64,000 bases of DNA from NCBI GenBank assembly GCA_964234715.1, contig OZ174278.1; one strand, 5' to 3'. Made by a program: the position numbers and the translations under genes. The notes beneath the pieces were generated by a model, which had not been told where the DNA came from, ran no database searches, and saw nothing but the letters and a program-made list of their open reading frames with translations. This stretch comes from Podarcis melisellensis (Eukaryota). This document shows positions 1,631-61,121 of this stretch, piece by piece (position 1 is the stretch's first letter; each line of letters begins with the position of its first letter).

Positions 1631-1751
1631 GGTGAATAACTGCGTGGGATTTTCAAACTACAAGTTTTTCCTCCTGTTTTTATTTTATTCCCTCCTGTAT
1701 TGTCTTTTTGTTGCCTCTACAGTGCTGCAATATTTCATAAAATTTTGGACA
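1631..1751 (+). CDS. ZDHHC20: ZDHHC20 exon ([40 protein letters not shown])
   Basis: Polypyrimidine ctag acceptor, gtaagt donor, 121 nt, in phase with previous exon; end of DHHC cysteine-rich domain plus TM helix. Confidence 0.95.
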
Positions 1752-13900: not shown

Positions 13901-14760
13901 CGTTAGCTCCTGGTTACTTAGCAATACATCTCTTGGATCTGTGTTGGAAACTTTCATGCTTTAACTCAGTCTTAATATCCAATATGTATTCTCCAGATCT
14001 TAACTTGAATCTTGCAAATGGTAGAAAGTGTCTGTCCACATTTACAGAACATTAAGTGAAGTTAAGTTGTAGAAGATCATCCAACAGGGATATGACTGAC
14101 TCATAACTTGGGTCAAGTTAGGATGGCATCAGAACCTTTTTCTTGGTACCCAGAAATTGTAAACACCAACAGATGTACAAGTTAATTATGTTGCAGTTCC
14201 CAAGTAGTCCCAGAATTCTGGGATTCTACCAGGAAAATTTTATATAAAGTGGTTTAAGGAATGCAGATTTTTCCTTCATTCCTAAATGCATTTACCAGGA
14301 AGTCCTATGGGTTTCTGCAGAGATGACACATACATGGTTTAGAATTGCAGACCTTAATGCAAAACAGAGAACATCTCTCCACTGTGTCTTCATTTCTTCT
14401 GCCCTCGTGTGTAAATTACAAGGCCATAATAGTGACATCCTTAGTTTATGTCTAGGGCTGCCAAACCTGTGTGTTTACCAGTGGGTATGTCAAATACATT
14501 ATCCTGTATTTATGACAAAGGTGTATGCAAGGATTTTACTTAAATAAAGGTATATCCACTGTAACTAAGCAAGCTTGCAAATACTCAAATTTAAATTGGT
14601 ATGAGGTTATTTAGAGGATATATAATGTGAATAATGCATCTGTTTTTTATGTTGCAGATAGGAATATTCCTATGCACAAAGAAAGCATTGCCATTAATAC
14701 TTTAAAGTGACTTTTTAAACGGACTTTTATAAATAAATTAAATATAAAAGAATACAGATC
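10969..14760 (+). other. ZDHHC20: Probable ZDHHC20 terminal exon / long 3' UTR
   Basis: ctaat branch point, pyrimidine tract and tag acceptor ending 10968; AATAAA at 14542 and 14732 with T-rich downstream sequence; 3' end approximate. Confidence 0.55.
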
Positions 14761-15090
14761 ATTTTGCCTGAAATTTTCATGTTTTTATCTGCACCTTGTA
14801 ATATTTTCATGTGTATTTTTCACCAATAATTTTAAATCATGTTGAGTATTTTATATATCAAAGTGCAGACTTCCATTAATATCTTAAGCATAGCTCCTTT
14901 TAAGGGGAAAAAGCATAATCTTTAAACCCTTCTTTGCCAAAGTGATGATACATTAAAATGGATTATGACACACTGAATGCAAAAGAAACTAAATAAATAC
15001 GTTGAAAAAATGAGCTAACTTGTGAAATGCATTTCTAATTGGTGCAAGTGATGAAGATACAATTTCAATTCTCTTTTATGCGTGGGTATA

Positions 15091-15841
15091 CCGTATTTTT
15101 CGCACCATAGGACGCACTTTTCCCCCTCCAAAAATGAAGGGGAAATGTGTGTGCGTCCTATGGTGCGAATGCAGGGTTTCGCTGAAGCCTGGAGAGTGAG
15201 AGGGGTCGGTGCGCACCGACCCCTCACGCTCTCCAGGCTTCGCGGACCTCTTCGCAAGGAGCCGGAGCACTCCGGCTCCTTGCGGGGAGTTGCCAGCATG
15301 CCGAAGCCTGCGCGCGCTGAGCTCAGCGCGCCCAGGCTTCGCGGACCTCTCCGCAAGGAGCCGGAGCGCTCCGGCTCCTTGCGGGGAGTTGCCAGCATGC
15401 CGAAGCCTGCGCGCGCTGAGCTCAGCGCGCCCAGGCTTCGCGGACCTCTCCGCAAGGAGCCGGAGCGCTCCGGCTCCTTGCGGGGAGTTGCCAGCATGCC
15501 GAAGCCTGCGCGCGCAGAGCTCAGCGCGCCCAGGCTTCGCGGACCTCTCCGCAAGGAGCCGGAGCGCTCCGGCTCCTTGCGGGGAGTTGCCAGCATGCCG
15601 AAGCCTGCGCGCGCTGAGCTCAGCGCACCCAGGCTTCGCGGACCTCTCCGCAAGGAGCCGGAGCGCTCCCACGGCTTGCAGAGAGCTGCCTGTTTGCGGG
15701 CTGGGGTCGGGGGAAGCTCGAGCTTCCCCCGCCCCAGCCCCGCGCCTGGGGGGGGGGGAAATAATTTTTTCCCCTTTATTTCCCCCCCAAAAAATGGGTG
15801 CGCCCTATGGTCCGGTGCGCCCTATGGTGCGAAAAATACGG
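15091..15841. mobile_element. TA-flanked Tc2/pogo-like MITE containing a GC-rich palindromic minisatellite
   Basis: TIR ccgtatttttcgcaccatagg / cctatggtgcgaaaaatacgg, TA both sides; related termini at 25003-25249 and 54753-54980. Confidence 0.85.
15233..15669. repeat. 99-bp tandem repeat, ~4.4 copies
   Basis: ccaggcttcgcggacctct recurs at 15233, 15332, 15431, 15530, 15629; only a few substitutions between copies. Confidence 0.97.
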
Positions 15842-16199
15842 TAAATGCGTGGGGACATCACTTGGGAAGAGAAGCTTTAAAAGAGTTGGGGCTATCTCTC
15901 ATGTGTCAGTCCAATTAAATAAAGATAACAGTGGGCAGATGTTGCCAGACTTCACCTCCATTTTGGGTTCCCACACTTGGCTCCATTTTGCCTGGAAATG
16001 TTAGCTAGTAAAGGCTAACAAATTAGGACAGGATACATTTCACAGGTCCCATTGACACTATACTTGAAATGGAAGTGTCCCAGCCCAAAGCATGGATCAC
16101 TGTTGCCTACCTCTGTCCCTGACAGGTTGCTGCTAGAAAGCATGCTACCACTGAGGACACACAACATGACAAAGCTAAAATCAAGAAACACTCTCAAGA

Positions 16200-17650
16200 T
16201 ACACTTCCGGGGAAGGAGCCGTCGCAGGTTAGTCACCTCTCTCGGGAGCTCCCAGATGTAATTAAGTGGTGACTAACGGTGGAGGATTATGTGTCATTTT
16301 TGTCTCTGCTGAACAGAGACAACATTTGGATTAATTCCTGGATGTTCTTGATGGATTGCTTGCTGACGTGGGATCGAGAAATCCTATTGGACGGCTGAGT
16401 GACCAGGAGTGGGAAAAACGGTAACATTGCCCAGGCACTGCTAAAGATCTCTGGAGGTCAATCTCCTAGGAAAAGACGTAACCATACCTCCTTTCTTTAG
16501 TTATATCTGAAACTACTATAAATCACTAAAGAAATTAAAGAAACTACTCCTTTGTCAGTAAAAATGTCAATTTGAAATACAACCCTAAAGCTGGCTTAAG
16601 AAGAGAAGTCATTGAAAGACTGACGGCAAAATTGGTTTTCTTCAGGAAGTATCTAGTTTGTTTCGAGGAAAGCATACAGCTGTTCATAACACACACCTGC
16701 TTATAACAGAGAAGAGAATCTCTAAGAAGTGTCTATGTTCTTGTGCTGTTATATCTTTGATCCTCCATTTCACAAGTGATTGCATTGACAGTAATGAAAA
16801 TTAATGGTTACTGCTGCGCTTGCATTAGGAAGAATGGAATGCTAAGAATGTGGTTAGGACTGTACTTCTAGCAGCACCCAAGATTGCAAGTATGTTAAGA
16901 AATAATCTATTAACTGTGGCAGGTTTTCAAAAATTATTTGATCAACAGAGAACGCAATTAAAAATGGGAGATGCAGAAAATGATAATGAGCAAATCACTG
17001 AGTAAAGTGGAGGTGGGTGTGGAATTGCAGCTCCTGGGGAAAAATACTGGAGATGGTTTGCTATATCAGGAGGAAGGTTTTACACAGATTGCTGAAGAGT
17101 CACAGCTCCTGGAAAAAATTATCAAGGTTAATTTGTCAGCCCTCGAGGATGGTTTATTGCTGATGCTGGAAGGAGTGCAACAGATGTAATGCTGGAAGGC
17201 GATGGAATTCATGGAAGGAGGACTCTGTATTAACTTGGAATCATCTCAGAAGACAAAGTGATCATGCTTCCTGCCATACTTTTGGAAAAAAAGAATGGAA
17301 ATACAGGAAATTGAAAGAAAAAATGGCAAGGACTGAAGACCATGGCAATAGGAAATGGAACTGGAAGATACAGGAACTTTTTGGGAGTGCGAATGTCTAC
17401 TTAATTTCTGATCAATTGTGGACATTGTCATATAAACACAGTAAAGAAATTCATGATGAATAAAGAATAAGGACTGAACTGTCTTTTAAAATCTGGTGGT
17501 AAAGTTGTGAGGGTGGACCGGAAGAAGATTAAGGCCGACTCTTACTTTTAATAATAATTGGAGAACCTCTTTTGGACTTCTTGGATGGGAAGGGAAAGGA
17601 ATGAAACTGAGATGCCTGGATTTAACACTGGGAAAATAACACCTAGAAGG
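16200..17650 (+). mobile_element. Possible degenerate L1-derived retroelement
   Basis: Purine-rich + strand, broken reading frames with faint resemblance to L1 ends; family not confidently recognised. Confidence 0.3.
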
Positions 17651-19969: not shown

Positions 19970-20145
19970 CATAGCTGTCAACTTTCAGATTTGAAAATAA
20001 GGGATCAACAACCTCAAATAAGGGCTCAGCCGCCTCACCTGTCCTGGGGACAGTCTACGGGATATCTAACAATCTGGGATAGCAGCGGGAAATGGCGCTG
20101 GAATAAGGGAATTTCCTGCCAAAAAAAGGAAGGTTGACAGTTATG
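19970..20145. mobile_element. hAT-type MITE
   Basis: TIR catagctgtcaac / gttgacagttatg; 8-bp TSD cacgacat/cactacat. Confidence 0.75.
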
Positions 20146-20629
20146 CACTACATGCTGGAAGAAGCATGTGAGCTGCTTTGGCTCCCCACCTCCACCCACT
20201 CATGGGGAATGAAATCCTGCTTTCTGTATTGACCCTGTTCCCTCGCCCATCGCCTGATGCCACCAGTGATATCAGCTGATCAGCAAGGTGTGCATGATGG
20301 GGGGGGGGGAATGGCCCCATGGACAAACCTGGACGTCCTTGAGGACCAGAGGATCCCCACTTCCCTGGAGGCTCACCTGGAGCGTGTGAAAGGACTGTGA
20401 ACCGAGTTCAGTTCCAGCAGCGGAAAACAACGCCTCTGCTTTAATGCTACACGTTTGCCTTTTGCGCCTGGGCTTCGGCTGGTAAATCTTAGGAGCTCTA
20501 GTAACAACAAGAAGAAAAAGCAGGAGATCTGACACGTCTGAAGTGCTCCCATCCCGGGATGGGATGGCAACTAGCCCCTGCCTCCTTCCACTCCAATTCT
20601 ATCAATGCCTACCAGCCACCTTGGGCAGC

Positions 20630-21260
20630 TTCTCGGTGTCCCGCCCGCTTCCCCTTGCCGCCGGTTTAGAGGGAAACCCTTTCCCCCGCGCCCACCTGCT
20701 TCCCCGTCCCTCCGCTCTGCCCGCCCGTCCCCGCAACCCCTTTCCCGCTGCTCCTCTTCAGCTCACCGGTCACAGGTCCGCCCGTCCCACCTCGGCAGGG
20801 AAAAGAAAATGGCGCCGCCCGAAAGGTTCCACCGCGCTTCAGCCTCAAAGCTCTCGCGAGAGTGAGGAGATGTCCTCCCACCCCCCCTTCCCAGGTTCAC
20901 TGAAGAGGCGTGGAAAGTAAGCAAGGGCGGGGCTGGCTCGCTCGCTTCCCAGCTGACCAATCGCTGAGCTGGCAGATTCAAACGTCAAGGCGGGAGAGGG
21001 GGGTGTGGCGTGAGAGAAAAGCGGTGGGGGTTGGAGACAGATAGAGATTTAAAGGAGCAATTCCACCCCACCCCGTTTGCTGGTCTTCAAAAAGGTCCCT
21101 TCTACTGGGCAGGAGTCTGCGCGCGTTTGTTTCTCGCCCCCCCCTTCACCGTTTTATTGCTCCTGCCCGTAGGGAGAGGGGCTGTAAATACGTGTTAGTG
21201 AGCGGTCGTGTGGAAGAAGGCAGAGAAGTTGCAGGCTCCCCAAGCGTGGCAACGGTAAGG
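20630..21260. promoter_or_regulatory. CpG-rich bidirectional promoter of MRPL57 (-) and SKA3 (+) with non-coding first exons
   Basis: YY1-type aaaatggcg (~20806), TCTCGCGAGA (20852-20861), CCAAT (20957), CHR-like ttcaaa (20977-20982), ggcggga (20989); minus-strand donor gtgagc at 20761-20766; plus-strand gtaag donors at 20917 and 21255. Confidence 0.8.
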
Positions 21261-25002: not shown

Positions 25003-25249
25003 CTGTATTTTTCGCTCTACAAGACACACTTTTTCCCTCCTAAAAAGTATGGGGAAATGTGTGTGCGTCTTATGGAGCAAATGCAGGCTGCACAGCTATC
25101 CCAGAAGCCAGAACAGCACGAGGGATCGCTTCGCAGCGATTCCTCCTGCTGTTCTGGCTTCTGGGATTCAGAATATTTTTTTTCTTGTTTTCCTCCTAAA
25201 ACTAGGTGCGTCTTATGGTCTGGTGCGTCTTATAGAGTGAAAAATACAG
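25003..25249. mobile_element. Tc2/pogo-like MITE (related to 15091-15841)
   Basis: TA|ctgtatttttcgctcta ... tagagtgaaaaatacag|TA; one central hairpin. Confidence 0.85.
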
Positions 25250-25593: not shown

Positions 25594-26230
25594 GTAACTA
25601 TGAATATATTCCACATTTCCCTTATCACTGTATGTGTATTTTTAAAATTAAAGAACATATTGGGTGTTTTTACAGAATGCAATAGAAACTTTCAGCTTGG
25701 AAATTACTAATACTTTTGTTGCATACTCACTCACTCACTCCAGTCATCCTCCTTTTTTATTCTAGTGTAAAATGTGCTTGGAATCCTTTTAATTAAAAGC
25801 TCTGACTTATATAACTGCTATATGCCTATAAGTACAGAAGCTATCGAAGCTTTAATGTAATTCTTTAATATACTTCCGAGGTTTCTGCCCAAGTATCTCT
25901 TGCTGTGTTAAGATTTGCATAATAAACCTTCCATCCAGTTGCAGATACTGCCCACATTGAATTGCTTTCAGTGGTGTTTGCATTCAAGTGTGCATCCATA
26001 TTCTGGTGTAGCTAGTCAGGTTTACTTTTCTTTTTTTAAGCTGCATTCGAATGGTAGAGTTCCTTGTTTCCTAACTATGCTTAGGAGCTCTGGAATATAT
26101 TATGTACCTCCCTCACTGCTATTTCTTCCTATTACCCATGAAATTCCACTCCTCAGAAGAGGAGTGGAATTTCATGGGTAATAGGAAGGAATATAGCAGA
26201 AAAATGGTATAGTTTGCTATACCATTATTA

Positions 26231-36003: not shown

Positions 36004-37272
36004 CTGTAAGGCAAAGAAGAAACCAGTCACTTGCTGCAAAGCAAGCAACGAATAACAAACCCAACTAACCTAGATCGCATACAAGAATTGTTTTGTTTTC
36101 AACCTACATTTTTATACAACACTTTTAAATTAATTCTTATAACCAAGTCCTTAATGTAAGACTAATGTAAAGACTATCCTTTAATCAATACTTGTAGCTA
36201 AATTTATCAAAGGGGAAAAATATTTCAAGACCTAAGATTAAATTTGATATTGTTAAGTACTCTTAAAAAATAATTTCTAACATTTAATTGCATTTTTTCT
36301 TTTAATTTTTGTAACAAAAAGCCAACACCTTATATACATTAAAATGGAACAGGGATCTGTTTAATCTATGATAAACAATTTCGAGGCATTTTTTTTTACA
36401 AATTTTATGAAATAAATAATAACAAACGTTGGCCCTTTCTGTAACATTTGTTATTATTTATTTCATAAACTTTATACACCATTTGACTAAGAAACATCAA
36501 GGCACTTAAGTGGAACCTTTTTTAAATCTAGAGGTACTTGGAATTTTCTTCATATGTAACGGACTTGTGCTTGGGCTACAAAAAACTGTAGGATATAATT
36601 ACAAAGTTTAGCAAAAACTGTGGCTAAATAAAGGTTGAGACTTTAGCTAATTAAATTAACTGCTCAAAAGATGCTCCAATCAATTCACCTGCATAATATG
36701 TGAGTCGTTATTTTATGTCAATTCTCTTATAGTGTAATAGGCAGTGCTGCTGTTTTATGTCTTGATATTTCTTATTTACATTGTCTTCTGCATGCATATA
36801 TCTTCTGTACTATCATTCCTTATGTACTTTTATTACATATCTACATATATTTTTTTTAAAAAGCTATTGCATCTTAGCCTTTTCCCATTAGACATTTTTA
36901 TATCCCATGGATATAAAAGCAAGCCAAAGTGGAAAAACTGAATTTTGCTTTTATAAGCGGGGGGGGGGGGAGAGACCGCTTGTGTAGACACACCCCTCCC
37001 CACTTTTTCCAACACCACTTAGACAACTTATCTAAACGAGCGTTTCTTCAGCCATAAAATAGGACACACACATACACACACGTAAACGGTATGGTTGAGA
37101 GAAAGGCATCTCTTAGTTCACCAATGCTAAATACTGAACGTCTGAGTAGGCCATCACGAAGTCTCCCAACAGGTAAACCAGCCCTCCCTGTGAAGCATAC
37201 ACGCTGCTGCAAACGCGGGCGTGTAACGTGTGAAAGCGCCCTCCCGCCTCTTCCCCCAGCTCCTCCCCACAC

Positions 37273-37344
37273 CTTCTCACGATCGATAGGCTTCTCGGGC
37301 TCCTTCTTAATCTCCTCCTGAGTAACGCGAGACTCCACCGCCAT
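37273..37344 (-). CDS. SAP18: SAP18 exon 1 coding part (MAVESRVTQEEIKKEPEKPIDREK); total 153 aa
   Basis: AAGATGG Kozak context, gtgtgg donor; the four exons sum to 462 nt. Confidence 0.97.
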
Positions 37345-37830
37345 CTTGCTGTCTGGTCGGACCGACCTCCGTGGAAGCGACCCAGCGAAGCGAAAGGGGA
37401 GAAGCGGCAGCCAAGGCTCCGGTTCCAACCCACAAGCCGCACCTTCCTCCCCGCCGCAAGTTCTCCCCCACCCCAAGAGCCCGGACGTCGCCTCTACCCG
37501 CCTCTTCAGGCTCCGCTGAAGCAAGATGGCGGCGCCCACGGGCGTCAAGCTTGCTTTTGGAACCGCGGCGGCGCAAGGTCTCGCGAGGTCTAAGAAACAA
37601 AACGTTGGGCTTCAGAGGCGAAGCTTCTTCGAAGTGGCCAATAAGGATTCGCTCCGCGATGGAGGCGCGGAGATCCTGGGCCGAGATTGGGGCGCGCGGG
37701 GCTGGGGGCGGGGCAAGAGTTGCGGTTGGGGGAACTGAAAAGAGAGGCTGGGGCCTGTTTGTGAGGTGTTCGGCCGCGGGAAATGCGGGCTTGGCGGGGA
37801 CGCGTGTCTGGAGGTGCAGGTTCACACGTT
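37345..37830 (-). promoter_or_regulatory. SAP18 CpG-island promoter / 5' UTR
   Basis: CpG-rich; YY1-type caagatggcggc (~37522), tctcgcgag (~37579), CCAAT boxes (~37639, ~37686), GC box (~37706). Confidence 0.8.
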
Positions 37831-38135
37831 CAACCCCCCTTTGTTATTCGGACGTGCATTATACACCGAAAACATTTAGTAATTGAAAGCTTTAATTTTA
37901 TATGCACTGTAAAGAGTACACACGCCCAATATATATCATCGTCATTATAATTATTCTTTGTTTCCCAGTCTTCACCCCAACGTCCCAGGGCAAGTTACAA
38001 CAGTTAAAACGTGGTATAAAAAACATTTTAAAAGACTTAAAATTACCGAAGTGAAGTGGGTACTAAAAACACGCATCTGGAGTGTCAAGTACATGATTTG
38101 TAAGCCGCAGTGGTTTATAGAGCGTCGGTCTTAGG

Positions 38136-38352
38136 ATAGTCAAAAAAAATTCCTTGCAGTAGCACCTTAAAGACCAACTAAGTTAGTTCTTGGTATGAGC
38201 TTTCGTGTGCATGCACACTTCTTCAGAAGAAGTGTGCATGCACACGAAAGCTCATACCAAGAACTAACTTAGTTGGTCTTTAAGGTGCTACTGGAAGGAA
38301 TTTTTTTTGTTTTGACTATGGCAGACCAACACGGCTACCTATCTGTAACTGG
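38136..38352. mobile_element. Penelope-like element pseudo-LTR fragment in inverted-repeat configuration
   Basis: 84-bp arms (38141-38224 / 38226-38309) around a 1-nt centre; ctgaagaagtg...cacgaaagctcat...ggtctttaaggtgctactg resembles reptile Penelope pLTRs. Confidence 0.75.
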
Positions 38353-54752: not shown

Positions 54753-54980
54753 CCGTATTTTTTGCTCTATAAGACTCACTTTTTCCCTCCTAAAAAGTAA
54801 GGGGAAATGTGTGTGCGTCTTATGGAGCGAATGCAGTCTGCGCAGCTATCCCAGAAGCCAGAACAGCAAGAGGGATTGCTGCTTTCACTGCGCAGCGATC
54901 CCTCTTGATGTTCTGGCTTCTGAGATTCAGAATATTTTGCGTCTTGTGGTCTGGTGCATCTTATAGAGCGAAAAATACGG
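54753..54980. mobile_element. Tc2/pogo-like MITE (same subfamily as 25003-25249)
   Basis: TA|ccgtattttttgctctataag ... cttatagagcgaaaaatacgg|TA. Confidence 0.85.
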
Positions 54981-55725: not shown

Positions 55726-56399
55726 TACTGGTAAGCAACATTAATGTTTCTGAATATTTTTGATGATACCAATGTAAATATATACTGTATTGTCAAAAGA
55801 ATTGGTCTTAAATATGAATAGTCATTGCAACTCAATGGAAAACAGTCCCAAATCTTACACTGGATGCTTGGTACTGCTCACTCTGGAATATAGCTATTAT
55901 GGAGAAAATAATTTGAGATTTCGGCAAGGACCAGAACCTACAGCCACTTTTTATACGATTTGGCATTCCTTTGGGGATATATACAGTGGAACCATCATTT
56001 TCAAGACAACTCTCCTCACAAGCCTGGCAAATCTGGAACAATAGTTGATGATCTGATAAGGTTGATTGCCTTTACTTGGACTTTGATAATTTAACTCATG
56101 TGCAACTACTGATTCTATGCGCCTATTCTACAGTGTTGTTTCTCATCTTTTAATTTTCATGTTGTTTTAACTATCCTCTCTGTTTCCGTTGGGCAAACGA
56201 GTCCTGCATTACAGCGGGATCGCGGTCCCTTCCAACTCTACAATTCTATAGCCATCATTATAAAATGGAGTTAATTATTATTTAAAAAAAACTTTGCAAA
56301 ATAGCAACAATTATTATTACCACTATTATCCCGGTAACCAACATGGCTTAATAACGACTCGCCACCCAAGCAGAACTGCAACAGGTCCCAAGCCGCTTC

Positions 56400-58830
56400 T
56401 TTAACGCGCTATTTATCAGCGCAGCCGGGATCGTGCGAACAAGAGCGCGGCAGCCGAGGCGCGGGACGTCCAGCGGGGCCCCGCCCATCCCGCGCTTGAC
56501 GAGCAGGGCCCCGCCCCGCCCCTTTTCTTCCCCCGCTGGAATGCTGAAGGGGAGGGAGGCGGAATGACGCCGGAGCCCGGGTCACGTGGCACGAGTGGAA
56601 TGCTAACAATGTAGCGAATGTCCCAACTGTGCCCGGCCGCCGCCGCATTCGGAGCCCGAAAGGGGGAAAGGGAAGAATGGAGACCGAGCGGAGCGCTGGG
56701 GGCGGCGGCAGCAGCAGCAATCGAGGCAGCGGCAGGAGGCAGCGGAGAGGAGTCACGGCGGCGGCCCCCTGATTCTCCCGCGGGCACCGAGAGAGGGAGG
56801 GGGCTGCGTGCGGGGAACCCCCTTCTCCGCTCGACCAAGACGGTAAGGGGGTTGTTGGAGGGGTGGGGCAAGGGGGCTTCCCCTGGTGGAGCAGGCTGAG
56901 CCCTTCCACCTGCCCCTCCCGCCCCGTTCGGCGTTACTTCGCAGTTTTCTGGCTCCTTCTCTTCTTTCTTTAAAGGGGATTTTTGCAGAAGTTGCGCAGG
57001 GATTCTAGAGGGGGCGGCTTTCCCGGGGGAATCCTGAAGTTGTTCTTTAAAAGAAAAAGGGATCCACGCGACGCGATTTATTATTCCGGGAAGGGAAAGA
57101 GGCCGGGAGGGAGCTGGGCAGTCGGCGGAGGAGAGCGGCTCTTCTTGGAAGGAGAGCGGGGGAGTTCCTCCGAGGGAGCGGCGGAGGGCAGCTGCTTTGG
57201 CCAAGAAGCGGAAAGTGGCCGCCTACTCGACGGCGTGTGCTAAGGACACGGGCCGTGCGCGGGGGGGGGGGGGAGGGCTTTGCAAGCCAGCAAAGTCAGG
57301 GCTGGGCGAAGAAGCCGTTGTGAGGAGGGAGCCCTGTGGGGAGCCTCGGGGGCTCGACGGAGGAAGGCATCTTCCCGTTTTCAAGGCTGCTCGGGACCAA
57401 ATCCCCGCGCTGGATGGTGGCTGCCGGCAGCCCCAGAGGCGACTGGGGTGGAGAAAGTGGTATCTGTGGCAACAGGATTTGCTGGCAAACCGAGGGAGGG
57501 TTGGGATTCTGGCCCGCCGCTTCCCTTTTGCTTTGCTAAGTGGAGCGCTAGTTGCTGACCAGGGGCCTCGTCGGCTAAAACTTAACGTTTTTAGAGGGTG
57601 CTGCGCAGCATGCAGAAGAGGAAGAGCGAGCGAGTTCTGGATTACTTGACGTGCCCTTGCATCTGGATTTAGGGGCTGAACTGGCCGTGGTGTCAACCGC
57701 TGGTGGAGCCAGTTGCCCCGTAAGCGTTTCCACACGGTCCCCTATGGGAGCGTTTACACGCCCAGGTAAGCCCATTCGCGTGTGTAGCGTTAGCTCGTCC
57801 AGGGAGAGGTGGCTCGGGCAGTTGAGCCGACGGCGGCGCGTTACACGCGAATGGGGCTTCTTCCGTGGTAAAGGGACAGTCGGGAGAGATGCGGAACAAG
57901 ATGGGCAATATTTTAACCCGTGGCAAGTCTTAAGGTCCAAGTCAGCCTTTACGCAGCCTTTACGCGTCCGCGCCTTAAAAAAAATAAAATCAAAGGTGGG
58001 ATTTTGTTGTGTCCTTTAGGTGTAGAACAGGGCAATTTCTAATTCGCCGTGCGAGCCCGGGTTTCATTATAATTATAATTTCGGATTAAGCCGTGCGGCG
58101 CGCAAGAGCGTGGTTATTTTATTATTTTTTTGAGGATGTGGCATGGAAGGGACAAGAGACGGAGCTTTCCTGCCCGCTCCTGTGCGCGATTCCTCGGAAG
58201 TTGCGCGGGGCTTGGCGCTCCAGAACCCGGCGGCGTGCTCGGGATTGCAGCCTCCCGGCTTCTGGAGCGGCCGAGCGACCTTCGCCTCTTCCTCTTGCCC
58301 AGCGCCACACCTCCCGTGGGCTGTGGAAGCGAGGAGGAAAGAGGGGGAGGATTGCGCTTCCACTTAAAGCCTTTCCAGAGAGGCCTTTGCACGGGCGCGG
58401 AGTGGGAGTCGCCGTGAGCCTGTGTGCGCCCGGCCGCTGTCGCGCTCGCCCTCTGCTACAGCGCGGCGCTCCCTTTGCTTTTGCTCGAGGCCTCTCGCGG
58501 CTCCCCGGCCGGAAGAAACCAGCAAACTTTCTTCCCAGCCCTTGGAAGTCGAACGGCGCTGCGCGGAGGGGAGTGGCGCCTTGGCCGCTTGCTCGAGTCC
58601 CAGTTCTGGGCCGGGGGAAACCTTGGAGCGGTTGCCTCCGTCGCCCATCCCTTATGCCCGGGCCTCGCCTTCCCGGCTTCTCCTCACCCGCTTTGGAGTA
58701 GATATTGGTGGCCGTGTGACAGCTGAGCCCAGCCGCAGGACCTTCCTTCCTTGCTTTCCCAACCCCGGCCCCTCAGTCTTGGAGAAGCGCCCTGCAACCT
58801 CTCCTCAGCATGGGCTTGAGGGGCGCGACT
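56400..58830 (+). promoter_or_regulatory. Large CpG island; probable LATS2 promoter and non-coding exon 1 (ending at 56842)
   Basis: Very high CpG density, tandem GC boxes (~56508-56522), E-box gtcacgtg (56581), three GGAATG sites, G|gtaagg donor at 56843. LATS2 identity is inferred from LATS2-SAP18-SKA3-MRPL57-ZDHHC20 synteny; no LATS2 coding sequence recognised in the window. Confidence 0.7.
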
Positions 58831-61121
58831 GGGGCTAAAGTTTGAAGCGGGAAAAGGTTGGGGCTCGCTTGCAGCGCCAAAGCAGATCTCCAATGTTTTC
58901 ATTGCTCCTGGGCCTTCACAGGAGAATCTTGTGCGTGGTTTGGGGAAAAGTGGATAGAGATGTTTTTCTTTGGGGCGGGTCCACCAGGTGAGGCAGTCCC
59001 TCAGGTGGCATGGTCTACGGCGGAAGCACATCACAATGTCCATCTATCCCCTCCTTTTGCTGATGGAGATCTTCCCTCACCCATTCCTGGGTGGGGAGGG
59101 GGCCCTTTGTCATTTTGGGGGTCTGCCAGGTGCCAAAATATCTTCTTTTTTTCTACCTCATAATATTAGAACTCCCCACCCCGGTCATCTAGTGAAGCTG
59201 AAGGGTGAGAGGGAAATTCAGGATAGCCCCAAAGGAAGCAGTTCCTCACCCAGCATATAACTGAGCTGTAGAAAATGCTATAACCAGATGTATGGATGGC
59301 CACCAATTCGGATGACTTTAGAAGGGGATGAGGCATATTCATGTTCTATAAGGCTCTCAGTGGCTACTAGTCATAGTGACTGTGGATGCTTCCTAATACC
59401 AATTGCTAGAGGTCACAAGCAAGAGTACTGTTGTGCTTATGTCCTGCTTGTGAGTTCCTATGGGCAACTGGTTGGATATTGGGAGAGCAAAATGCAGGGC
59501 TAGATACGCCTTTAGTCTGAGCCAGCGGTGCTCCTCTTACATTCTTAGAACATTTTCACAAATGACATTTGATTGCTGTAGTTTCTACCACAGATGTAAA
59601 TCCGATATTGCTGTGAGAAATTTGGCTTTAAAATTGACAGTCTTTTACTTTCCATTCCACATTAGTTAGCAGGAGAGAGGACCAGAGAAGAGGTTCCTTT
59701 GCAGATTTTTGAGAGCGAGACATCAGTGTGTGCTAGAAGTTGAAAGGGGACCTAGCTTCATCAGGTCAGGTGCCTAGCCATGGAGACATGGGTGGTAGGA
59801 AGCAGTTGATGGCTTGGGTCTATTTCTTTCTGGCAGATGCATTTTCAGACAATCATTTTATTTCCTTCTGTCTTTCACCACCACTTTTTCTCCCAAGTTA
59901 CAAGGATGCTAGTAGTTTCAGAGGACTCTTATCATTCTTATAGAGCACCCTGGGAGTTCTCACTTGAAACAGACAAGCAAAATGCTGCTGATAACATGTT
60001 CATCTCTTGTGAAGGCTCTCTAGGAAAGCTCAATGCATGATAACTGTCTTAGGCAGAATGCATAAAGAAAGCTAATTCTTCTGCAGTTTCAGTTGTTCTT
60101 TATGCAGATTTCTGCGTAACTTGAAAGTTACACAATTAGCAGTTTGTCCAGCAAAAAAAAAAAATTGGTTGTTTTGCAGAATTGTAGCAATTGTTATTAT
60201 GTGGGATATTAAGCAGTGCTGAATTGTTCTTTAAAAAAGTGAGATTCATTATGCTCTGTGAAGTTCCATAATAAAGGAACTTTTGACAGCTGCAATTTGT
60301 ATAGGCATTTCTATACTGCAGGTTTATTTGTGTTTGCAATGTTGTGTTGCATAGCTGGGGGTGCATATACGGCTGTTATTTCCAGGGTTTCCATGTTAAG
60401 AGCATATGCTGCATCTGTGGGCAGATTATCCTGGGCCAAATGGGATGTCTTTAGGGACATGTGGGAATGGCTCTCAGCCCATGATTCTGCATTTGTTTGT
60501 ACATATTGAGGTCACGCTGGGACAACGGGGCTCTTGCTTTTCTCTTTTTCATCTGAGCTCTCACGAGAATTGTGTAATCCTCTTCTTATTCCACATGTCT
60601 AGCATACTAGTGACTATAGCGTAGGAGCAATTGGTGTCATGGGTAACTCGTCTGGCAAAACATTGCCGTGTTGCACAATTGAACGGCATATTGATAGAGA
60701 TGGGGATTGAAGGTGTTGAAAAAGGCCAACTACGTGGAAATGAAGTCACCGGGGTATGTGCCTCACCTTTTTAAACCAGGGAAGTGGATCAGACAGGTAA
60801 CAAAGACCAGCAGTCTCTTCCTATTCTGCATAACCCGAACAATGGGATCTGTCTGTGCTGTGTCATCACCTGTACATTCACCACAGACAAGAAAATCTCC
60901 CTTTACACACAGCGTGTTTCAGTTTTGCGTTGGACCGGAAACTAGAATTCCCCATGCAGACAGTCCTTACTGAATACTTTATCCTTTCTGGGGATGGGCT
61001 GCAATTGCTCACCAACCCATGCTTCATTCCCAAGCATGGTAGACTGAATTCCTCAGCTATCACTTCCTATCTCCTCTATAGCACTATTTGGTTGGCTTTC
61101 TGTTTGCTGTACGCTGGTGGT

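Follow-up and report, generated by a model that had tools for sequence, protein, structure and literature searches.

Gene context and structure of the element

The window (the whole 64-kb stretch of lizard DNA that was analysed) contains exons of a ZDHHC20 orthologue. The exon at 1632-1751 (plus strand) matches residues 155-194 of human DHHC20 at 37 of 40 positions, which in this single-exon comparison is better than its match to DHHC15, and a DHHCPW motif lies near 871 (plus strand). Poly(A) signals are predicted at 14543-14992, upstream of a non-coding MITE (miniature inverted-repeat transposable element) of 751 bp at 15091-15841, which has 27-nt terminal inverted repeats (TIRs) and carries a hairpin array. 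An earlier note on this DNA had placed the hairpins just past the ZDHHC20 poly(A) region; the gene identification held up, and the poly(A) region stands as a predicted one. Six small runs from organisms G and H (X15-X20), whose RNA nature is a guess, contain 0.29-0.40 of the sampled words of 14500-16500, about the share of one flank, which would fit a left flank transcribed as the ZDHHC20 3' UTR in relatives.

Several other features of the window were recorded in passing. A near-perfect palindrome of 203 bp at 38124-38326 (101-nt arms, 91% complementary, 1-nt gap) is AT-rich and unrelated to the MITE, and an inverted repeat at 26120-26193 (35-nt arms, 97% complementary, 4-nt loop) may be a further small element of the hairpin kind. 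The GC content of the window, otherwise about 40%, rises to 0.55-0.61 in kilobase blocks at 20001-21000, 37001-38000 and 56001-59000, which may represent other GC-rich repeats or the CpG islands of nearby genes.

The MITE is flanked by a TA target-site duplication, with its left copy at 15089-15090 and its right copy at 15842-15843. The left TIR (15091-15117, plus strand) begins CCGTATTTTTCGC and forms an inverted-repeat pair with the right TIR (15815-15841, minus strand). Taken together with the TA, the 29 nt at the left end are 97% complementary to 15815-15843, and an exact 21-mer occurs at both ends. The inner 19 nt of the left TIR pair at 100% with an inverted copy at 15151-15169, 33 nt away, giving a left subterminal hairpin at 15099-15169 (predicted fold of 15089-15169, z = -8.0). 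A 14-nt motif, GTGCGCCCTATGGT, occurs four times in the element against 0.01 copies expected by chance. Two copies lie near the left end, at 15104-15117 (minus strand) and 15151-15164 (plus strand), and two direct copies lie within 15798-15828 (plus strand), at 15798-15811 and 15815-15828, the outer one inside the right TIR. These copies are candidate transposase-binding sites. Further inward on the right side, the plus strand contains a run of 11 G (15748-15758), followed by an A/T/C-rich spacer common to a second family copy at 25 kb.

Between these ends, the element is built from a chain of hairpins. The first, a 58-nt hairpin at 15184-15241 (H0), has 29-nt arms that are 93% complementary. 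It is followed by a tandem array at 15233-15669 (plus strand), consisting of 4.4 copies of a 99-bp unit (TRF score 846, 98% matches, no indels). Each unit comprises a 40-bp palindrome, a 9-nt linker, a 34-bp palindrome and a 16-nt linker, such that 74 of its 99 nt are palindromic. The inverted-repeat search found four copies of the 40-bp palindrome, of which those at 15302-15341 and 15401-15440 contain one mismatched pair (C/C) and those at 15500-15539 and 15599-15638 contain two (fold z = -5.4). The 34-bp palindrome is perfect at 15351-15384, 15450-15483 and 15549-15582, flawed at 15252-15285 (two mismatched pairs) and degenerate at 15648-15681 (five mismatched pairs); if one mismatch is allowed it reaches 42 nt, and this 42-nt version folds with z = -6.7. 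The array is followed by a closing hairpin at 15696-15743, with 24-nt arms that are 83% complementary, four mismatched pairs and a fold z of -6.2. In all, 11 stems, one of them degenerate, take up 78% of 15184-15744. When folded as single-stranded DNA, the whole element scores z = -23 relative to dinucleotide shuffles, and single modules score z = -5.4 to -9.9.

The structural description in the earlier note is borne out by these results. It had described a MITE interior, a period of 99 bp in about 4.4 near-identical copies, a perfect 34-bp palindrome, a 40-bp palindrome with one mismatched pair, separate hairpins before and after the array, and about ten consecutive stems in about 560 bp. The array was recovered by TRF, the shorter palindrome is perfect in three copies, the longer one has its single mismatched pair in two, both outer hairpins were found, and the stem count comes to 11 if the degenerate one is included. 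The TIRs and an exact empty site with TA duplication, found in three sequencing runs (X4, X8 and X9, see below), agree with an element of the MITE type.

The element contains open reading frames of 198-278 aa, and no match above the Pfam cut-off was found for it. These reading frames were rejected as genes: they are derived from the repeat only, several frames are open, the sequence is GC-rich and the period is 3 x 33. A GC-rich repeat with a period divisible by three gives rise to long open frames, and these ones are therefore regarded as artefacts.

Empty site and insertion polymorphism

The locus was compared with Logan contigs from four runs, representing four organisms, aligned to 14500-16500. 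Run X4 carries the organism code of the best holder of the stretch, from a different sample and study, and runs X8 and X9 are from two further, related organisms; organism names are coded, so that "organism A" may not cover the assembled individual. In each of X4, X8 and X9, one contig of 8.4-8.8 kb joins 15088 to 15842 and skips 753 nt (15089-15841). At the joint, 2 nt fit either side, and the empty site reads ...GGGTA-TA-AATG.... Because the contigs skip 753 nt and carry TA at the joint, the filled site consists of the 751-bp element plus a duplicated TA. Over about 1,250 bases, the X4 flanks differ from the window by two substitutions and one 18-nt insertion, and the flanks of X8 and X9 differ by about 10 and about 15 substitutions, respectively. 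The insertion is thus polymorphic within the source species or private to one lineage, and is absent from close relatives. Contigs can lose an allele, so X4 could be heterozygous instead of empty on both chromosomes.

Two further observations concern the flanks. The 18 extra nucleotides in X4 (CACTTCCGGGGAAGGAGC) follow 16201, in the right flank, and look like a polymorphic tandem duplication. In run X5 (organism B), the flank contig ends at 15090 and 15907-16500 is without a contig, unlike in the other three runs, possibly due to a different insertion or deletion at the same site in this organism.

The flanking 9-mer ATGCGTGGG had suggested a target-site duplication of 8-9 bp, as in hAT-like elements. 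This candidate was rejected, since the contigs with the empty site carry both 9-mers. The direct copies of the 9-mer (15078-15086 and 15845-15853) bracket the TA target; this arrangement looks like a long duplication of the target site, and automatic callers of such duplications could be misled by it. Helitron and Helentron carriers have no TIRs and no target-site duplication, insert between A and T, and end with a 3' hairpin before CTRR; a carrier of this kind (DINE-1 type) was rejected for the present element, which has TIRs and a 2-nt TA duplication. A foldback element was likewise rejected, since all units of the array are direct and central and the TIRs are only 27 nt long.

Short TIRs together with the TA duplication place the element among Tc1/mariner-type (Stowaway-like) MITEs, a probable assignment to superfamily for which the TA duplication is the sole basis. 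TA flanks all three copies of the family found in the window. The reading that accounts for the locus as a whole is a very young, non-autonomous cut-and-paste insertion of a Tc1/mariner-type MITE, belonging to an extremely abundant lizard family, and we hold it with considerable confidence.

Other members of the family

The 64-kb window contains three copies of the family. Apart from the element, there are two older, shorter members, both TA-flanked and in plus orientation: one of 247 bp at 25003-25249, with a single central hairpin at 25104-25161, and one of 228 bp at 54753-54980, with a single central hairpin at 54854-54920. Both are CpG-decayed and without the array. They share with the element its TIR, its left subterminal hairpin and the two direct 14-nt motifs at the right end. 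The motif differs between the old copies and the element, and is altered in concert at four of four sites, as would be expected for the transposase-binding sites of a distinct subfamily.

The abundance of the family was gauged from summed contig depth relative to single-copy flanks in the four organisms, giving ratios of about 5x10^4 for the subterminal part and about 10^2-10^3 for the array, which are rough, as depth is not copy number. The family is very abundant and the subfamily with the array is much rarer, and both are present in all four organisms. Small size, TIRs, a TA duplication relative to the empty site and high copy number, which are the features of MITEs, are therefore all found together here. 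Loose contig ends at 15175 indicate that most members run on from this point into the canonical hairpin of the 54-kb copy. The closing-hairpin module is common among other family members, as seen from summed contig depth and from loose ends at 15698. At other loose ends and joints these modules follow one another in a different order, so that variation in the modular make-up of the interior is characteristic of the family.

Searches for the family elsewhere gave no relatives. Prokaryote, virus and metagenome collections, where lizard DNA is not expected, contained no match to the 34-bp palindrome or to a degenerate TIR pattern. Literature text searched for the TIR, palindrome and canonical-hairpin strings returned unrelated primer-like matches only, and nothing on the family of this element was found in the literature on lizard or Podarcis MITEs.

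Amplification and origin of the array

The units of the array are nearly uniform. Those at 15302-15400 and 15401-15499 are identical, and that at 15500-15598 differs by one base. The unit at 15599-15697 has 11 differences, 10 of them within its last 28 positions (15670-15697, plus strand), where only 18 of 28 bases agree with the unit consensus. We take this diverged tail for an old copy at the edge of the array. Because inner units differ by 0-1 base and the edge copy is diverged, an older single module is taken to have been amplified recently; the tandem amplification proposed earlier, to which two identical units and 98% matching positions attest, fits this view.

The number of units at the locus comes from the assembly only, since Logan contigs collapse arrays. 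Only contigs were aligned, none of which can span the 437-bp array of near-identical units or the whole stretch, and a mis-assembly of this repetitive, hairpin-rich DNA could in principle have created the array or its copy number. Against such an artefact, contigs that resemble the 99-bp unit at 90% or more are found far above single-copy depth in four runs of four organisms, and comparison with the empty site gives exact ends for the element; we consider it extremely improbable.

The module that was amplified can be traced in part to the family itself. H0 and the 40-bp palindrome share an 8-nt base, GAAGCCTG/CAGGCTTC, and the GAAGCCTG motif occurs within the window only in the 751-bp element. 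H0 and the 40-bp palindrome also have identical right bases, and the array begins within that of H0. In addition, the left flank and base of the 40-bp palindrome align to those of the canonical hairpin (p 0.003-0.02 relative to shuffles). For the 34-bp palindrome, the similarity to the canonical hairpin arm is weak (p 0.04-0.3, shuffles), and for the closing hairpin none of significance was found (p >0.3, shuffles). The proposal that all modules are paralogues of the canonical hairpin was accordingly dropped, the relationship being significant for H0 and marginal for the 40-bp palindrome with its left flank, and falling short of significance for both the closing hairpin and the 34-bp palindrome. 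The hairpin of the family itself thus seems to be the source of part of the 99-bp unit, and the rest may have been captured from outside.

This mixed picture bears on an alternative in which the array is captured cargo, i.e. an existing 99-bp repeat or foreign hairpin module taken up by the MITE shell, which may move between unrelated shells. The two modules without significant similarity to the canonical arm would be accounted for in this way, and a capture model has been cited for the satellite of miDNA4, another Tc1/mariner MITE, in the account given in PMC12628747. The exact 8-nt base shared by H0 and the 40-bp palindrome, which in the window is confined to the element, the alignment of the 40-bp palindrome's left flank and base to the canonical hairpin, and the start of the array within the right base of H0 all argue against it, and wholesale capture seems unlikely.

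A standard member of the family is about 230-250 bp long, with 27-nt TIRs, four 14-nt motifs near the ends and one central 58-nt hairpin. In the history that we propose, it would be mobilized by a transposase supplied in trans and presumably binding the 14-nt motifs. The source lineage of the present copy would have gained extra hairpin modules after the central hairpin. The 99-bp two-hairpin module would then have been tandemly amplified, most likely through replication slippage or unequal exchange, favoured by the palindromes. The symmetry of the hairpins in source copies may have been renewed from arm to arm during replication or gap repair, a step that is suggested by the pattern of substitutions in H0.

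Maintained symmetry of the first hairpin

By alignment to 25104-25161 and 54854-54920, H0 is the homologue of the single central hairpin of the family. H0 and the 25-kb hairpin are both 58 nt long and align without gaps, and the 54-kb hairpin has nine extra loop bases. H0 differs from the canonical hairpin at 16-17 positions. Out of its 27 stem pairs, six are changed on both sides and are still Watson-Crick pairs, and two changes are one-sided. The six double-sided changes are A-T to T-A (once), A-T to G-C (three times) and C-G to G-C (twice), and three of the six are transversion pairs. In a simulation that placed an equal number of base substitutions at random, the mean number of such pairs was 0.7, and six or more occurred in 1 of 200,000 trials (P about 5e-6). 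H0 and the 25-kb hairpin are predicted to fold identically, down to where their one internal mismatch lies.

Compensatory changes in the stems, which the earlier note had proposed as a check, are thus present between H0 and the canonical hairpin, with the double-sided class exceeding the one-sided class by six to two. The same note had suggested that palindrome cores are replaced while symmetry is kept. The double-sided changes bear out the maintained symmetry; replacement does not hold, as each base of H0 has its homologue in the canonical hairpin.

The two resident copies show another pattern. Between the 25-kb and 54-kb hairpins, there is no double-sided change that keeps pairing; by our count there are three one-sided changes, and one pair differs on both sides and is unpaired in one copy. 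The comparison of 6:2 with 0:4 and 0:5 gives one-sided Fisher p values of 0.03 and 0.016, and that with the strict count of 0:3 would be weaker, all of these being tiny numbers from three hairpin copies in one window. The signal is small but clear, and suggests that symmetry is kept in the transposing lineage and is not restored in resident copies, which would decay one arm at a time.

Two processes would leave such a trace. In the first, symmetry is renewed by copying of one arm from the other, through intrastrand template switching or fold-back synthesis. In the second, source copies are selected for an interior that can fold and so hold the two ends near each other for transposition. Template switching, which had been put forward earlier as the cause, is plausible, and selection on source copies yields the same pattern. 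Selection on any single pair must be weak, because H0 was mobilized with two mismatched pairs. As half of the double-sided changes are transversion pairs and per-pair selection is weak, we lean towards occasional arm-to-arm copying. We infer, short of proof, that this is the somewhat better explanation, and regard selection for foldability as a tentative second, with a lower probability though a substantial one.

A more far-reaching version of the copying hypothesis treats the hairpin modules as self-evolving cargo, a "mobile cruciform minisatellite" that parasitizes MITEs, is kept symmetric by dedicated arm-to-arm copying tied to transposition or gap repair, is needed for efficient mobilization and hops between shells. 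We consider this speculative and quite improbable; if true, its signature would be double-sided changes in the source lineage and one-sided decay in residents. Irrespective of this version, the symmetry signal bears on the choice between selection for foldability and mechanical correction of palindromes.

CpG content and possible host roles

The element and its array are rich in CpG, with observed/expected ratios of 0.92 and 0.97, compared with 0.23 and 0.38 in the 5-kb flanks. At 755 bp, a GC content of 0.67 and a ratio of 0.92, the insertion falls within the sequence criteria for a CpG island (>500 bp, GC >0.55, ratio >0.65). It had been argued from the almost undecayed CpGs that the DNA is young or unmethylated. 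The lack of decay is clear from the ratio, and youth is supported; an unmethylated state is not needed, because the absence of the insertion from a sample with the same organism code allows youth alone to explain the undecayed CpGs.

A portable CpG island, a dsRNA source and a fragile site had been put forward earlier as possible roles. These properties could also be taken to indicate that the host has put the insertion to use, making it a source of hairpin or small RNA or, in its place downstream of ZDHHC20, a regulatory element or a CpG island that is portable and unmethylated. The island-like composition and the position on the sense side, downstream of the ZDHHC20 orthologue, would suit such a role, and transcripts of the element are predicted to fold into long hairpins. 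The insertion is, however, absent in X4 and in two related organisms, and is therefore neither conserved nor old enough for domestication. None of the runs that contain the stretch is recorded as RNA. No Rfam family reached its gathering score in a search of the element and the whole window, hammerhead included; the best sub-threshold match scored 81.7 bits against the 168 needed, with both strands of the stretch matching. A known RNA family was rejected for the element, as the sub-threshold matches are to generic microRNA-precursor models, several of them on both strands, and they lend the RNA variant of this hypothesis no support. A host role is thus very unlikely: the insertion is not fixed, and no host function is indicated.

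For genome annotation, it matters that insertions of this kind are predicted to place CpG-island-like, cruciform-prone and length-unstable DNA beside genes, in this case downstream of ZDHHC20. They are also likely to break short-read assemblies.

Comparison with known tandem-repeat MITEs

The earlier note had singled out the array as the best candidate for an undescribed system. This claim fails, because MITEs containing tandem repeats, including a vertebrate one of the Tc1/mariner type, have already been published, as shown by miDNA4 and Xstir in Xenopus, DTC84 in a clam and DINE-1 in Drosophila. The defining feature of this group, a central array of direct repeats between TIR-bearing flanks, is found in the present element (15233-15669). 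As summarized in PMC3879986 and PMC12628747, MITEs with a central array of a few repeats include DTC84 and pearl in bivalves, DINE-1, SGM, mini-me and PERI in Drosophila, and Xstir and miDNA4 in Xenopus, and the models outlined there for their formation invoke stem-loops and microhomology.

Among these, miDNA4 is similar to the element in being a vertebrate Tc1/mariner-type MITE, with an interior repeat that is present as a monomer or as a variable array, and has been proposed as a seed of satellite DNA (Scalvenzi and Pollet, cited in PMC12628747). The likeness is drawn here by description only. In that account (PMC12628747), the miDNA4 repeat was captured and has AT-rich flanks of microhomology; by contrast, the unit of the present element consists of two long GC-rich palindromes, part of which apparently comes from the MITE's own central hairpin.

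DTC84 and pearl resemble the element in that modules with inverted repeats enclose a central array, which has a few core repeats at most and a palindrome in each unit (PMC3879986). The palindrome was suggested to be a hotspot at which the array changes in length, and the flanks were described as a "cassette" for internal repeats (PMC3879986). In DTC84 the palindrome of each unit measures 12 nt, there is an adjoining microsatellite, the duplication is a putative AA, and the element may be related to Helitrons (PMC3879986), whereas the present element has a unit in which 74 of 99 nt are palindromic, a TA duplication and 27-nt TIRs.

Stem-loops have also been invoked for the duplication or tandem arrangement of internal MITE sequence in Xstir of Xenopus and Angel of zebrafish (Hikosaka and Kawahara 2004 and Izsvak et al. 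1999, as cited in PMC12628747). As summarized there, these models concern repetition of the MITE or of its whole interior, whereas in the present element a two-hairpin sub-module was amplified within one intact shell. Foldback elements such as FB and Tetris (PMC4079207) are likewise hairpin-rich DNA transposons that carry repeats and can seed satellites. Their tandem repeats form long inverted termini; in the present element, short TIRs flank an array that is direct and central.

Viewed against these systems, the locus offers a clean and dated example of an array of near-perfect palindromes spread by a MITE in an amniote, a group where such elements have been little described. Since the MITE both carries and spreads the palindrome array, it provides a view of satellite seeding by transposons in progress. 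The element is set apart from the systems above by a unit that is three-quarters palindrome, by its richness in GC and CpG, and by the signal of paired substitutions in its stem.
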